Source: Salisapilia sapeloensis CBS 127946
Taxonomy: Eukaryota; Protista; Oomycota
NCBI GenBank assembly: GCA_023334545.1
Contig: JAADVB010000039.1
Span: 38,063-102,062 of the forward strand
Direction of reading: 5' to 3'
DNA: 64,000 nt
Part shown: in pieces, positions 29,772 to 37,269 of the stretch
How the letters are laid out: every line of letters begins with the position of its first letter
Position numbering within the stretch: the stretch's first letter is position 1
Notes under the pieces: generated by a model
What the model saw: the letters and a program-made list of their open reading frames with translations, nothing else
Databases searched by the model: none
What the model was told of the DNA's origin: nothing
Position numbers and translations under genes: made by a program

Positions 29772-30212
29772 CTACAGCATGACCACAACTGCTGCTCCTG
29801 CCGCCGTCGCAAGCGCCGCTGAAAACGTGGTCGAAGCCGCTCCATCGCCGGAAGAACCGTCGTCCTTGCTCTCTTCCGGGCACTTGCCCTTGGAAACCTG
29901 CTTTAAGTCCTCGTTACTGCACACAGCGTTCTTCAATCGGCACCCGTTATCGTACGTCTTTCCGTCCGAACCACAGATATAGTCGATCGTTGTTGGGCAT
30001 CGCGACGTGCATCCGCCCGGTTTCACTCCACCATCATTGTCTCCAGCGCTTCCGGTCGTACTGCCACTTCCAGTCATCTCGTCACCGCCCGCGGTACTCT
30101 CGCTCCCGGTCATCCCAGATGACTCCGTCGTGCCACTCGCAGACGCTTCTTGAGCGACGCAGGTCGAAGCGAGCATCGCGATGGCTAGGACAATGACTTG
30201 AAATACTTTCAT
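29772..30212 (-). CDS. Kazal-type serine protease inhibitor, signal peptide, probable GPI anchor
   Basis: Signal peptide MKVFQVIVLAIAMLASTCVA; six-Cys Kazal CTSRCPTTIDYICGSDGKTYDNGCRLKNAVC..KGKC; hydrophobic C-terminus AALATAAGAAVVVML. Confidence 0.92.
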   Translation of the reverse strand: MKVFQVIVLAIAMLASTCVAQEASASGTTESSGMTGSESTAGGDEMTGSGSTTGSAGDNDGGVKPGGCTSRCPTTIDYICGSDGKTYDNGCRLKNAVCSNEDLKQVSKGKCPEESKDDGSSGDGAASTTFSAALATAAGAAVVVML

Positions 30213-30382
30213 TCTTCTTCACGTAAGGTAGTACTAGCAGTAGTAGGAAATTTGGACTTTAAAAAGCATGCACGTCGACTATTTTGGACGGATGTTCCGA
30301 TCAGACGACCGAACGGACGAAAGGTACTGTGAAAGGGTATTTGGAGACCTTGTCGGTGGTTTTATTCGAAAGATTGATCCTG

Positions 30383-33189
30383 CTAATACGTCTCTGCCAT
30401 GATATTCACCACGAGGGACGTCCATCCAGCAAATGGATGAACACGTTGGCCATGGCCATAGTCGCCTGTAGCTCGAAAGTTGCCATTGTACTGTTCCCAC
30501 AGGTACCCCGTTCGGTCGTACTCGCGATAGATATTCGAGATCACATTTGTTCGTAGTGCGTTGTAGGCGGCAGCGAATTGGTCTTGATATGGACTATTCG
30601 TCGAAGGCTGGGCGTAGTGGTATAGCGCTTCGAGCGCCAAGTAGTTGCCACAAATCCAGACGGAGCCTCGCCAATACGGTGCATCGCCTGGTGCGTTCTC
30701 TTGCTCATAAAACGTATCAGCAGCTGATAATGACCTCAATCCAAACGGTGTCCAGAGATGGTCCGGAGATGTCAATCGCTTGAGCGAGATTAATAACTCG
30801 GGTGCATCCGGTGGTAAGAGTTTTAGTAGCAGTGGAAACATACTCACATATCCAATGCGCGTGACGTGCTGAAGTGCAATCTATCTGAAAGTTAGTCACA
30901 AGTGTATACAGTTGATCAGCAGGTTCTTACCGTCCTCGAAACGTAAACAGGCTGCATCACGACTTTGCCCTTGCCATCGCCCATCGGGAACATGTACGTC
31001 GGATAAGACGGCGGACAATTGGCTGCTCGCTGGTCGAGTTTATCCGGAGGCGCCGTTACGTCCCTAACTTGCCCTTGAGCATTGCGGCACCGGATGACGG
31101 CGTGGTATTCAATCCTTCCATCTTCACTATGCTCTCCCACATCAAAGAACGCGCCGTACTTGTCGCTCCAATGATACTCGAAAAGTCCATTTAGAAACCG
31201 TTGTCGATCCTTTGTTAACGCCTTTGCCTTGTCCTTCTCATCCACGATCATTGCAAGCTTGCTTAGAATGTCACTCGCTTTGATCATCCAGCACGTGAGA
31301 TCTACATGCATCTCTTCATCACTCACAGATGATGCACGAGGGTAGTCATCTAACCCGGACGACAAGGTGTTGGCAATCAACTTGCCATCATACGGATCTC
31401 GTCCTCGCCATCTGAAACTCGCTCGATCTTTCTCGACCTTTGGTCCTCGCTGGACTTGTGCCATCCAGCGATACCATCGCTCTAGAAACGGCATGACGAT
31501 ATGAACAAACTCTTTCATACTAGCTACATCTTCTGATCGAGCTAGTAGTTTATCTAGAAACAAAAGCAACGTCGGTGGATTTGCATGCTCAACGTGCTGC
31601 ACGAGGAACTCGGATGGCACACGTCGTCGAGACGACTCGCCTCGGATCTGTTCTCGAGCAATATATCCGCTTTCTTCCATGAGTCCAAGCCAATGCGCTA
31701 AAATGTCACGTGAAATGTCTTGGTCGAACATGGAGATACCCATCTGATGGAAACCTTCATCCCAGATGAAGCCTCGGGGGAAGAAGGATCGAGAAGGAAC
31801 GGCTGTAAACAGAGGTCGAGCGTCCGTTTCCACGACTTCCGGGCTCGATGGGTCTCGCTGGACGAGAGACGTGCCGTAAAAGTAGCTGATACCACCCATG
31901 AGCTGACTGAAGGCTGCCTGAGCAAAGGCAATGTGACTGGCATTGAAACGATCTGCCGTCTTGTCATCGACTAAAGACGAGTCCATGGACTTTTCAGACA
32001 AACGAAAGACCTGTTCGAATCGATCGTTGAAAGCTGTCGATCGTTTCATGATTTCTGCGCTCAACAAGTCATGCAACTCGATACCTGCGGTCTCCTTTTG
32101 TCTTTCATCAAATGCAATATCGAACGTAACGTCATTTGGATGGAAATGAGAGATATCAGCGATAAATGTCGCTTGAATCACGAGCAGAGTGCTATCATCT
32201 TCGACGGTGTTGTCTAGCACGATCTTCCGATCTCCTTTCTTATCGTCCTGAACGCTCTGCTTTACTAGTTTCTCTTTGACATTCAATAGATTCGCAGATC
32301 GATAACCAGCGAAACGAAGATCAGGCTTATTAATATGCTGCTTCGTCCGGAGCTGAGTACGAACTTGGAAACTAAATGGGGCATTGCTAAAGTCCACATC
32401 AGATTCGCTTGTCGGTTCTGTACTTTTGAGCACTAGATCCATACACATATCGGTGGTATCATCATCACAAGACGTCGGAGCCATGGGCTCTACTATAGCC
32501 TCCATGTTCGTCTCTTTGATATGACGTCGACATTCATCTTCCAGCTTTTCATCTCCACATTCTAGATCGATGTAGAAGAATAGAGACACCTCAGTCTCCT
32601 TCACGTTTGTCTTTCTCATACGCTTATCTCGTGGCTCGAGATAAGATGGAGCGATTCGAGTCGCCCAACCTTCCAAACCATTTGCATCTTGGTGATGGAG
32701 ACGAGTGTAATACGTTTCCAATTGAACGTGATTGTACTGATCCTCGATTGATTGCCTACCATAGTTTCGACCATCGTGTTGCAACCATCCGTACTTTTGC
32801 AATCGATCTTCTTGACGGCATTCATGACGGAGCTGCGAGATACTGTCGCGGTTTGTGCCCCATAGCAGGCCAGCTGAGACAAAGTACGGGTATGTACGTG
32901 ATCGGATGCCTAGATACAATCCGGAACGATAGGTTCCCCAACGCAAGTCTTTTTTGGAGTTTGCAGCAGTGTACTTCGACAGGGCATCGAAATCGAGCGG
33001 TGGAGGCGGTTGATACGCATCGCGATGGAGCTCTGACACAGGCTCCAACAACTCCCCTGTTGGAAAGATGTACCCGTAGAGGGTATCATTGTCTAAAAAT
33101 GGCGAAGTGGGCAACAATAACGCTATAAGTACGGCCACAATGGCACTCACGATGCTAATGGCTACTGACCGAGCACTCGCCATGGCCAT
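30383..33189 (-). CDS. MOGS: Mannosyl-oligosaccharide glucosidase (glucosidase I, GH63); 2 exons
   Basis: N-terminal anchor; WGTYRSGLYLG, LFTAVPSRSFFPRGFIWDEGFH, TLSSGLDDYPR, YWRGSVWI, YLWEQYN, HPFAGWTSLV..IMAETY*. Confidence 0.96.
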
Positions 33190-34129
33190 GATAGCGATCA
33201 AGATTTTCGTGTCAAATACGAAGATAAAAGTATTGAAGATATCGTTTTATTGCAGATGACAGGTACATCGTATATAACGATCTACAAAGCGGCGAAGTTT
33301 CCACGTCTCGAGCTGTTGAGTTCGTTACTGCATTCGTGGGGTTTACCAGACTTTTGAACAGTTTCTGGACGGTGTTAGTGCAAGCAGATCTCCTCGATGC
33401 AAGTGTATCGTCTGCAGGATTCATCCATCCAGACCAGACACAAGTCGGAATCTCTTTTACCGGAATGGAATGGTTACTCTAGTGGATCACCGATCTACTG
33501 ATGGAAGCTTTCGGTGCTTGGAAAAATTCGATGTTCTGTACGTGGCACAGAGGTATCTTTGTCTCCCAGTTGACGACTACATGTCTTTACAAAAATTCCA
33601 TTGAAGGCCGCAAGAAGCGACAGCAAAAGAAGTGGAAGCCAAAGAGTCGTGACACGTGGGATCTATCGTTAACTGCGTTGGCATTCGCCTCTGCCGAGGA
33701 AGACTCTCTTTATCGTTTCCAATTGCTGCGTTTCAGCTCAGGTGCGCTTATTCTCCCCGTCTAGTCGATCTATTCCAAATCCACGTGTGAAAATCCGTGT
33801 TGGTGGCAGAAAGAAGTCAACTCGTGATGCCAGACCAGGAAGACCATGACGCGGGAAAGTAGTGTTGGATAAACTGCTTGGAGAATATATCGTCCGATCT
33901 CAAGCGAGCTTCGCCTCCAAGTGTTTTTTGATAAAAAAGGGGAGAGACTTTCAGCGACATGCAGCGATCAACCTTAATATAGACAGTATCCCATGCCCAT
34001 TCTTCCATTTCTGTCGACGACGCTTTAGCAGATCATTACGGACGCTTGTTTCGCGTCTTCTTGTTTAACAGCTAGTTCCTAGTTCTGAACTCGACTTGCC
34101 CCCATACGCTTCATTCCAAGCATTTTACC

Positions 34130-35041
34130 ATGCATGCGTTTCATTCCCGTGGCATGTCCCCACGCAGTCCAAGCCCAAGTCGCTCTAGCTCCAGTGCTAG
34201 CAGTGCACATTCAGCCGACCACATGTCACTGCATCACGTCGTGCTCCAGTCGAAGCAGCAGAAGCTGAGCCACCAGCACGAGCGTGTACGTCTAATAGGC
34301 CGTCGTAGCCATGTAGACACCTACTAAATATATATATATATATATCCTTAGCTGTCCAAGCAACGCGCTTTTATAAGACACGAACGCCGAAAGCTTTTGC
34401 TGAAGAATGCGCTGCTCGAGTCAGAACGAGAACGATTTGAAGCGTCTAAAACGTCCGACTGGTTTTGCGCCAACGCGTTTGAAGGGTCCACAGAACGCCG
34501 TGTCACTCTCGATGTCGGCGGTCAGATTTTCGAGGTATCTTCTCGACTCGCATCCAAAGACCCTGGCTCGCTCCTCGCAGCTCTTGCTTCCTCCGATTCG
34601 CCTCTAAATGAAACACAACCTGGCTGCTTTCGTATTCATCGTGACTGGTACTTTTATCTCTACCATCTACCCGTCCGACTGGACTTCTAACTTGCTGCTC
34701 TTAGGTGGCTCTTTCGCTATATCCTCCAGTTCCTCCGCGACGGCGTCTTACCTCAAGACGCATGTCTTCTCCGTCAACTCTATCTAGAATCCAAGTTCTG
34801 GAAACTTGGGTCGTTACAGCAAGCCATCGAAAGCAAGAACCTAGAGCTCCTTCAATCAGCGTCCGACTCGACCGACCCGAAACAAGTGTGGCTGCAGGAC
34901 GCACCAACGTGGTGGGGTACTCGCAAGTCGGATCCGCCACTGAAAGCAACATCCGAGTCGACGGAAGAAGTAGAAGACTGGTGGACCGGGACCAAGTACA
35001 AAGGTGTCGACTACTCACTCTCCGTCGATCAAACGTCCTAA
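34130..35041 (+). CDS. BTB/POZ (potassium-channel tetramerisation-type) protein; 3 exons
   Basis: RVTLDVGGQIF..SLL..FRIHRDW|WLFRYILQFLRDGVLP..LYLESKFWKLGSL; introns after HER and RDW. Confidence 0.82.
34328..34345. repeat. (AT)9 microsatellite in the first intron of the BTB gene
   Basis: ATATATATATATATATAT read directly. Confidence 0.85.
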
Positions 35042-35091: not shown

Positions 35092-37064
35092 TTATCGTTC
35101 ACGTCTCGATCTCTTTCGCTCTCGACGGCTCGTGCGATAGCTCGGCCGACGACTTTCACTGCAAGTGCTGCAGCTACTGCTAGAGTAGCTGCGTCCACGA
35201 CTACGACTACGACTACGCCTTCGTCGGCTGCTTCGACGCCTCGGGCTTTCGCTACGACTCCGTCGACGTCTCGACCTGTACGACCTGTCTCGACTGCTCT
35301 CTCGCTCCCTACCTCTTTTCTCGGCATCTCGACGACTGTATGAACGTCTAGGCTTCGATGCTGCCTCCTTCTTCACCACCGTCTTCTCTTCCTTGGTGTA
35401 CTCTTCCTCGACTTCAATCGTCGTCACATCTATCCTCAAACCTCCTCTCTGTTGGTTAAACCCTTCGTCTCCACTCTGTGACTCCTTTAACGCATCGAAT
35501 CGACGCTGCTGCTCTAGCTTCCACCTGTCCAATTCATCATACGCCGCCAACATGTCCTTGGCCTTGCGTTCCGTCAAGACATTCCCGTCACGTAATCGAC
35601 GACACCAGCTAAAGCTAAACACTCGATTCTTCTTCCGACACGCAATGTAGGCTGCTGCTTCAGCTAGGAAAGGTGCTGGTACATGCAGACATTGTGGCAG
35701 CCAGAAGAACGCGTTCAAGACACGATCCGCTCGATCGGCAATGGCGTTGCGAAAGTTCTCTGGCATCTCATTCAACACTTGACGCAGGTGGAGGAACGGG
35801 AGCTCCGTCGTGAGTTCATACTTGATGCCTTGGAGCACTTCGATCTCGTAAAAGAGTAGATGCAGTCGCTCCATCTCGAGCACATCTTCATCTCCTGCAA
35901 GCAACGGTCGCTCGAGTATCTCGTGCATCATGTGGACCATGTGCAAGAGCTTCATGCGTTTACTCGAAGCTTTTGCCGAGAGGAAGACACATGCAGCAGC
36001 GAATTTAAACCGCTCTTTTGCGTAGATGCCTCGTTCAAAGACGCGATGGAAAAAGATAGAGGCTGTTAATGCCACATCTCGATCCAGTCCAAGACACTGT
36101 GTCAGTACGTCGATGAACGCGATGGATGTGAAGCGCCAGTGCTGCTTCTTCGCTTGTCTCGAGCCCAAATCACGCGGCTCAAAGAGATACGGACATGTCG
36201 TCCGGTCCACTCGGTCGTGGAGACGACTGGAAGGAGGTGGTGGAAATTGCTGTGCCTGTGCCTCTCGCATCTCGTCTATCCTTTCAGCTTCTGTCTTTGG
36301 CAGCTTCCCTGGTCCTCGCTTCGGCTTGGCCTCTCCTGCAACCAACTTTTTCCATTCCGGGATCTTCATCGGGTACATCCCGAGCTGTGCCCATCTCGTT
36401 AGTGTCTTGTTTAAACGCTTTCGTCCGTCATCTGATGAGCGAGTACTACGGACACAAGCTTGGATGACATCGTCGATCGTTTGATACCACTGGCGCTCAA
36501 CCTGTCGCCTGGACTCTTCTTGAAAGAGTTTCAGAAACTCGTATAGAGCGTAGAAGACCATGAGCCTCGATTGAAAGGGTATGTCTGCATACAAGGCTTT
36601 CTATATAATCGAGCATGACGTTTAGTTATTTGGACTTGCGTACGTAAGAAGAACGAAACGACATGGAGATATGAATCGACAAAGGACCATGCTTGGGTCC
36701 ATCGATGTTTATATCTAGAATCATTTGAATGTATTAACGCTACCTGTTTTAGTTTGACTTGAATCCAAACGGCGTGTTCCGAATGCTCCTTGATAAACGC
36801 CGCCGTCCTGCTCACGAGCTCTCCTTCCGACAATCGAGTCGTTAAACCTTCCAACAACATGTCAAACTCCTCCAGTTCCGCTGCCCACCTTTCATGTGCA
36901 TCAAGAGGCAATTGAGACGTTGGTGGAGGCGTGCCATCCCAAACAAGCGCCGGTCTCGATGGTCCCGATGGAACCTCCTGCTTAATCGGTCGATCACTCG
37001 CGTGACCTGGTCGAGGTGCTTGCAATGCACCCTCCATAAACTTTCGATCGCCAGACCCGCTCAT
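35092..37064 (-). CDS. CID-like domain + transcriptional cyclin (K/L/T-like) + RS-domain protein; 2 exons
   Basis: A phase-0 intron (about 36604-36743) joins AFIKEHSEHAVWIQVKLKQ to KALYADIPFQSRLMVFYALYEFLK..LNKTLTRWAQLGMY. Cyclin box: FIDVLTQCLGL..TASIFFHRVF..AAACVFLSAK..YEIEVLQGIKYELTTELPF. Tail: RSRSRSRGRS. Confidence 0.82.
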
Positions 37065-37269
37065 CACGAGTACAAAAGCGGTTTGAAGCGGATAGGAACG
37101 ATAGAGGCACGTGGACGCCGTCGACCACTGCACGTACCAAGGAAGGCTTTGATCGCGTTTTTACTCTTCGTTTAAGTATACTTTAGAGAAGGTTGCTCGA
37201 AGGTTGCGTATTCTTCTACACCAACAATATAGCACAAGCCATCTTCGTGTGGAAGCAAGGGCCGAGACC

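Follow-up and report, generated by a model that had tools for sequence, protein, structure and literature searches.

Does a single gene join a reader of the C-terminal domain (CTD, or tail) of RNA polymerase II to a cyclin of the kind that partners tail kinases? The question is raised by a minus-strand gene in the stretch of DNA from the oomycete Salisapilia sapeloensis CBS 127946 analysed here (64,000 nucleotides of contig JAADVB010000039.1, positions 38,063 to 102,062; hereafter, the window). A first-pass annotation, made from the letters of the window, had proposed that a CID, a cyclin box and an Arg/Ser-rich (RS) tail are fused there across one intron. We found a CID-class domain, a conserved linker, a double cyclin box of the T/K class and an RS tail in one 609-residue polypeptide. 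We consider it probable, at roughly 60%, that this product, which is conserved across the oomycetes, regulates a cyclin-dependent kinase (CDK) of the transcription type as a single-chain subunit.

Gene structure and intron conservation

The start codon and the end of the stop codon that we assigned to the gene, on the minus strand, coincide exactly with the limits given in the first-pass annotation (Table 1). An in-frame stop lies 33 codons upstream of the first ATG. The intron runs from a GT donor at 36743-36742 to an AG acceptor at 36602-36601 (tatatAG), and its GC content is 38%, compared with about 52% in the exons. Since exon 1 ends in phase 0 and a TAG directly precedes exon 2 in the exon-2 frame, position 36600 marks the sole in-frame acceptor. 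The intron contains no stop in the exon-1 frame, and lists of open reading frames (ORFs) therefore show two that overlap in different frames, 36531..37133 and 35092..36594. The first-pass annotation had warned that these two ORFs hide the fusion; indeed they do, and the same trap recurs in public models of the orthologous genes.

We searched the products of the two exons separately and made all full-length comparisons on database orthologues. The exon 1 and exon 2 products aligned colinearly, back to back, with the full-length orthologues; at the junction, the window reads ...IQVKLKQ|KALYADIPFQSRLMVFY and Globisporangium polare reads ...FQIKIKQ|RAFCESARQFQAKLMLFY, the lengths differing by one residue. 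Phytophthora and Globisporangium both have an intron at this KQ|R/K site. Specifically, residues 1-200 of the G. polare protein (L001) stop at the junction Q and are followed by a 410-nt gap, and residues 1-167 of the P. sojae protein (L003) stop at the junction Q before a gap of about 295 nt. As both break at the same Q, the position and phase of the intron are conserved. In Saprolegnia diclina, residues 1-302, comprising the N-terminal domain in full and the beginning of the cyclin, form one uninterrupted coding stretch, and the metagenomic protein P0050, a CID-cyclin-RS protein of 620 residues, is encoded by a single ORF. Because these two encode the CID and at least the beginning of the cyclin without an intron at this site, the fusion is independent of splice prediction. 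Overall, the single in-frame splice solution, the colinear orthologues, the conserved intron and the intron-less relatives agree with the earlier proposal, and, as judged from these comparisons, exons 1 and 2 are one spliced gene.

Among the public models of the orthologous genes, several seem to be faulty. Two from Albugo, P0039 and P0040, begin at an internal methionine (MLFYVLHEF) and thus do not include exon 1. In the Bremia model P0014 and in the model P0004, extra residues are inserted precisely where the conserved intron lies; the simplest reading is that the intron was translated through. The 1046-residue model P0025 from P. aleatoria also carries a SHIPPO-repeat family, and was probably merged with the upstream neighbour that is seen in P. 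sojae (L003:1-1369). The gene structure given here corrects those database entries that omit exon 1 or read through the intron.

Domain composition of the encoded protein

The Pfam CID family (PF04818) has a profile length of 120 and a cut-off of 23.9 bits. The exon-2 product alone had no Pfam CID match, as expected from a domain that is cut after helix 3. Among the full-length orthologues scanned, most matched the CID family, over roughly positions 17-115 of the profile. Most of these orthologues scored about 20 bits (E 4e-4 to 3e-3), below the cut-off, and four exceeded it (P0038, 25.3 bits; P0041, 27.3; P0042, 25.1; P0044, 26.2). Structure models were made of the CID and the cyclin as single domains; in the AlphaFold2 model of an orthologue, the CID domain had a predicted local distance difference test score of 94.2. 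Fold comparison of the N-terminal domain placed RPRD1A first (score 16.9, root-mean-square deviation 2.0 over 127 of 130 positions), followed by SCAF8 (15.8), SCAF4 and Rtt103 (15.6 each), Seb1 (15.5), RPRD2 (15.0), Ctk3 (14.8), Pcf11 (14.4) and Nrd1 (about 14); the repeats of CRM1 scored about 10 and VHS domains 9.1-9.4. PDB entries 5ce7 and 7jv7, which belong to the fungal CTDK-1 system discussed below, were among the fold-comparison matches of the domains. The modelled domain fits the CID fold, a right-handed superhelix of 7-8 helices, and is distinct from VHS/ENTH. By the orthologue model, then, the N-terminal domain is CID-class, grouping clearly with CIDs rather than with VHS domains. 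The sequence pattern from which the first-pass annotation had recognised a CID spans helices 2-7 of this domain, whose fold was confirmed through the orthologues; that annotation had made its reading depend on a CID/ENTH-VHS fold, and the comparison returned CIDs with RPRD1A at their head. No RRM or coiled-coil domain was detected in the CID-cyclin-RS protein.

The second domain was recognised directly in the window. The exon-2 product matched Pfam Cyclin_N (PF00134, cut-off 23 bits) with 24.5 bits (E 2.4e-5), above the cut-off; most orthologues scored 25-31 bits, and four fell slightly under the cut-off (20.2-22.4 bits). A profile of the family's cyclin region, compared with PDB sequences, matched cyclins T2 (E 1.1e-13, 54.8 bits), T1 (E 3.3e-13, 53.2 bits) and K (E 9.5e-13, 51.7 bits), then C (E 1e-9, 41.7 bits), L1 (E 4.3e-5, 26.6 bits), L2 (E 2.7e-4, 24 bits) and H (E 0.03, 17.3 bits). 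The region is of the T/K class, with T and K taken jointly, and consists of two cyclin-box folds, cyclin L being much further away. Thus, of the cyclin K/L/T-like box described earlier, the likeness to T and K stands (about 52-55 bits) and the likeness to L is far weaker (26.6 and 24 bits). A feature search of the ESM Atlas returned generic cyclin clusters only, below 0.8.

Alignment to cyclins T and K also bore out the earlier observation that the CDK-contacting lysine and glutamate are kept and that the KxEE pair is gone. The lysine of LSAK and the first glutamate of YEIEVLQ align with conserved cyclin T/K residues, and the KVEE of cyclins T and K is replaced by KASS in the window protein. 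The motif KASSKRM is invariant in the crown oomycete family; the corresponding residues are KAED in P0056, a metagenomic relative described below, and KTEN in P0050. The aligned motifs suggest that KxEE was lost stepwise.

The RS tail reported by the first-pass annotation is pronounced: the last 102 residues contain 22 RS/SR dipeptides and are 35% Arg and 25% Ser (60% Arg + Ser). RS-rich tails likewise occur in full-length orthologues from Peronosporales and Saprolegniales, that is, in both oomycete branches. Between the CID and the cyclin lies a linker with the family consensus GE.KPRRAP..LPRSE.ER (window version GEAKPKRGPGKLPKTEAER), which may serve in nuclear localisation or in docking.

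Table 1. Parts of the CID-cyclin-RS gene, in window coordinates
Feature	Position	Strand	Description
Whole gene	37064 (ATG) to 35092 (end of stop codon)	minus	two exons, 609-residue protein
Exon 1	36744..37064	minus	107 codons; residues 1-61 low-complexity, then CID helices 1-3; ends ...VKLKQ
CID helices 1-3 (residues 62-107)	36744-36881	minus	exon 1 translation, aligned to orthologues up to the common ...IK.KQ end
Intron	36601..36743	minus	143 nt, GT..AG, phase 0
Exon 2	36600-35092	minus	502 codons, then stop codon 35092-35094
CID helices 4-7 (exon-2 residues 1-91)	36328..36600	minus	FYALYEF 36535-36555 and RKRLNKTLTRW 36391-36423, aligned with the CTD-groove helices of RPRD1A
Conserved CID-cyclin linker	36211..36327	minus	consensus with invariant columns in the family
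Double cyclin box (exon-2 residues 131-361)	35518..36210	minus	Pfam Cyclin_N match 35860-36174; LSAKASS 35962-35982; YEIEVLQ 35830-35850
RS C-terminal tail (exon-2 residues about 401-502)	35095..35400	minus	RS/SR dipeptide count

Distribution and relatives

Word searches recovered 22 and then 46 relatives, all of them oomycete or unlabelled metagenomic sequences. The named genera were Phytophthora, Plasmopara, Peronospora, Hyaloperonospora, Bremia, Nothophytophthora, Pythium, Globisporangium, Albugo, Aphanomyces, Saprolegnia and Achlya. The CID-cyclin layout is therefore oomycete-wide, covering Peronosporales, Pythiales, Albugo and Saprolegniales, with at least one metagenomic relative outside. 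In a tree of the family, the window protein sits on a long branch outside any named genus, its nearest relative being from Pythium (61% identity). Of the 89 positions with at least 95% conservation across the family, it keeps 84, and conservative changes account for the other five (K->R, L->V, H->Y, E->Q and R->H); because these positions are kept, we regard it as a working orthologue on a long branch.

An exhaustive profile search returned 14 representatives below 1e-30, all of them family members or their fragments. Scores reached down to 264 bits for P0050 and then dropped to 103 bits or less. Below P0050, the matches were short fragments of the N-terminal domain or ordinary cyclins aligned over the cyclin part only, with the exception of P0056. 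This metagenomic protein of 470 residues, encoded by a single ORF (L005:1885-3297, also L006:87-1499), was the only CID-cyclin relative that the search found outside the oomycete family. Its Pfam matches are strong for both CID (54.2 bits) and Cyclin_N (33.2 bits), and hhalign aligned it with the oomycete family colinearly over both domains (98.9% probability); the two CIDs alone aligned with 96.9% probability (E 1.6e-10). P0056 shares the colinear CID-cyclin layout and the T/K-like cyclin, but differs from the oomycete family in a canonical YxxND groove motif, in KAED in its cyclin and in a Gly/Gln-rich tail in place of RS. A word search with P0056 returned no relatives, leaving it a singleton; the ORFs that adjoin it had no Pfam matches, and the GC content of its contigs is 48-61%. 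Two further proteins, P0120 and P0086, were considered as CID-cyclin relatives for the long N-termini that precede their cyclins and were rejected, as only their cyclin part matches.

As for earlier descriptions, our full-text literature searches found none of a CID-cyclin fusion. In databases, the orthologues are entered as hypothetical or as "Cyclin N-terminal domain-containing" proteins; the Achlya orthologue is called "CID domain-containing protein" by one source, and the precomputed Pfam annotation of the A. euteiches orthologue lists both the CID and the cyclin families. The separate domains are thus already visible in databases and, as far as we have seen, the fusion has apparently gone undiscussed.

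Proposed function and alternatives

The closest functional parallel, which the first-pass annotation did not name, is the fungal CTDK-1 (CTDK-I) complex, which consists of the kinase Ctk1, the cyclin Ctk2 and Ctk3 with its non-canonical CID (Lsk1-Lsc1-Lsg1 in S. pombe). Ctk3, whose fold is CID-like, binds both partners, cyclin as well as kinase, and helps kinase activation (PMC10746219; bioRxiv 10.1101/2024.10.14.618141). The oomycete protein differs in that both parts share a single chain, in which the CID precedes the cyclin, and in its added RS tail. Its CID also differs from Ctk3 in lacking a Pfam CTK3 signal and in being nearer in sequence to RPRD-type CIDs: neither the N- nor the C-terminal Pfam CTK3 profile matched any family member at E up to 1. 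We therefore treat the resemblance to CTDK-1 as one of function and not of membership. Ctk3 has been reported to be fungus-specific (PMC10746219), so the oomycete fusion is probably an independent solution.

Other known systems share single parts of the layout. Cyclin T (P-TEFb, with CDK9) and cyclin K (with CDK12/13) differ from the oomycete protein, which has KASS for KVEE, an N-terminal CID and a C-terminal RS tail. Cyclins L1 and L2 (with CDK11) are alike in combining a cyclin with a C-terminal RS domain, but their cyclin boxes are far from the oomycete one and they have no CID; the oomycete protein has the RS tail of this class and a cyclin box that is not of L type. SCAF4/SCAF8, RPRD1A/1B/2, Rtt103, Pcf11 and Nrd1/Seb1 are CID proteins, none with a cyclin. 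Compared with these CIDs, contact residues of the oomycete protein are replaced, either conservatively or not (D->E, R->K, R114->L).

We propose that the cyclin part would bind and activate a putative CDK9/CDK12-class kinase, which in turn would phosphorylate the RNA polymerase II tail. The CID part would anchor the complex either to the (phospho-)tail or to some other factor with a tail-like motif, and the RS tail would connect it to SR-type splicing and 3'-processing proteins. One chain would then perform what fungal CTDK-1 divides between the cyclin Ctk2 and the CID-like Ctk3, with an RS feature added, as on cyclin L, CDK12 and SCAF4/8.

The ligand groove of the CID was compared with that of RPRD1A. 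In a HMMER alignment, RPRD1A residues Y61, N64, D65, R106 and R114 correspond to Tyr, His, Glu, Lys and Leu, each invariant in the oomycete family, and to Tyr, Tyr, Glu, Lys and Leu in the window protein. In RPRD1B, D65, R106 and R114 mediate CTD binding (PMC11730240), Arg106 forming a salt bridge with pSer2 or pThr4 and R114 reaching pThr4 only (PMC11378909). Residues invariant in the family are concentrated on the helices aligned with the RPRD1A groove (Y64, H67, E68, K108, K112, R116 and W117); three of them, K108, K112 and R116, form a basic row. From the alignment, these groove invariants and the basic row would fit a conserved phospho-ligand site, short of proof. The tail of Phytophthora RNA polymerase II consists of YSPTSPA repeats (PMC11062530), and it is a matter of speculation that the Ala-7 tail is linked to the altered CID groove.

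Taken to its full extent, the proposal describes a single-chain reader-writer. The first-pass annotation had likewise envisaged a module that recruits a CTD kinase to already phosphorylated polymerase and couples it to splicing or 3' processing; its structural reading is supported here, and its functional reading is a hypothesis. The CID would read phosphorylated YSPTSPA through its invariant Tyr/Glu/Lys groove and keep the cyclin-kinase bound there, allowing phosphorylation to spread along the tail; the RS tail would pass the transcript on to factors of splicing and 3'-end formation; an Ala-7 tail would be matched by a groove that has lost the equivalent of Arg114; and the layout would predate the oomycetes, as P0056 suggests, as an independent counterpart of fungal Ctk2 + Ctk3. 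We put this fuller version forward tentatively and judge it less likely than not.

Several observations weigh against reading the gene product as a tail-docked kinase subunit. The window CID is split by the intron, and its probable class was assigned through orthologues. The exon junction itself is predicted from sequence. When a profile of 16 N-terminal-domain sequences was compared with PDB sequences, the RPRD1A CID was the top match over its whole length, and the match was weak (E 0.57). The positions aligned with CTD contacts appear non-canonical and only partly kept (N64->H, D65->E, R106->K, R114->L). In the crown oomycetes KASS takes the place of KxEE, which is nearly universal among cyclins, and the kinase interface may thus be altered, or there may be none. 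The CDK partner of the fused cyclin is hypothetical, and no search for it was made. Finally, the CID-like fold of Ctk3 reportedly does not bind CTD peptides, and a CID fold alone therefore does not show tail reading.

In the main rival, the CID-like domain is a structural or allosteric module of the Ctk3 type that packs on the cyclin and the kinase in cis, to assemble or activate the complex, and does not read the tail. We find this doubtful. The family matches CID rather than the CTK3 profiles, RPRD1A ranks first both by sequence and by structure, and the groove-aligned residues are invariant, with the basic row that is expected of a phospho-ligand site. Moreover, Ctk3 contacts Ctk2 through its C-terminal domain, and no counterpart of that domain was detected in the CID-cyclin-RS protein.

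A lesser rival, which we judge unlikely, keeps the CID and RS tail and gives up the kinase: the cyclin would be a pseudo-cyclin scaffold that no longer activates a kinase, and the protein would serve RNA processing as a CID/RS adaptor in the manner of SCAF4/8 or the RPRD proteins. It draws on the KASS motif, invariant in the crown oomycetes where KxEE has been lost, and on the graded decay through KAED in P0056 and KTEN in P0050. We consider it highly improbable that the fusion is a gene-model artefact, in which one gene or transcript would encode a small helical protein and a second would encode cyclin and RS tail from the internal methionine of MVFYALYEF...: the Albugo models P0039 and P0040 begin exactly there, but such a start would leave helices 4-7 of a seven-helix domain without helices 1-3, family-invariant residues lie in exon 1, the intron position is conserved in phase, and Saprolegnia and P0050 carry the fusion with no intron at the junction.

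The single-chain kinase subunit that we favour bears on a wider problem. The retention of CTD kinases on the tail, and their coupling to RNA processing, are commonly attributed to readers and writers that are distinct proteins. A conserved fusion of a CID, a T/K-class cyclin and an RS tail is a "Rosetta-stone" link, which argues that these activities physically work together. It also offers a single tractable protein for testing feed-forward tail phosphorylation, in organisms without Ser7 in the tail. The protein may be an oomycete-specific component of transcription, in a group that includes major pathogens of crops and animals.

Two observations concern the surroundings of the gene. A plus-strand ORF that ends at 35041 converges with the CID-cyclin gene, whose stop lies at 35092; as only about 50 nt separate the two stops, the 3' untranslated regions of the converging genes probably overlap. 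On the metagenomic contig L004, the neighbourhood of the cyclin gene includes one for a glycoside hydrolase 63 (glucosidase I; L004:3276-5624), and in G. polare a Kazal gene lies upstream of it (L001:71-970); both may reflect local synteny with positions of about 29772-34068 in the window.
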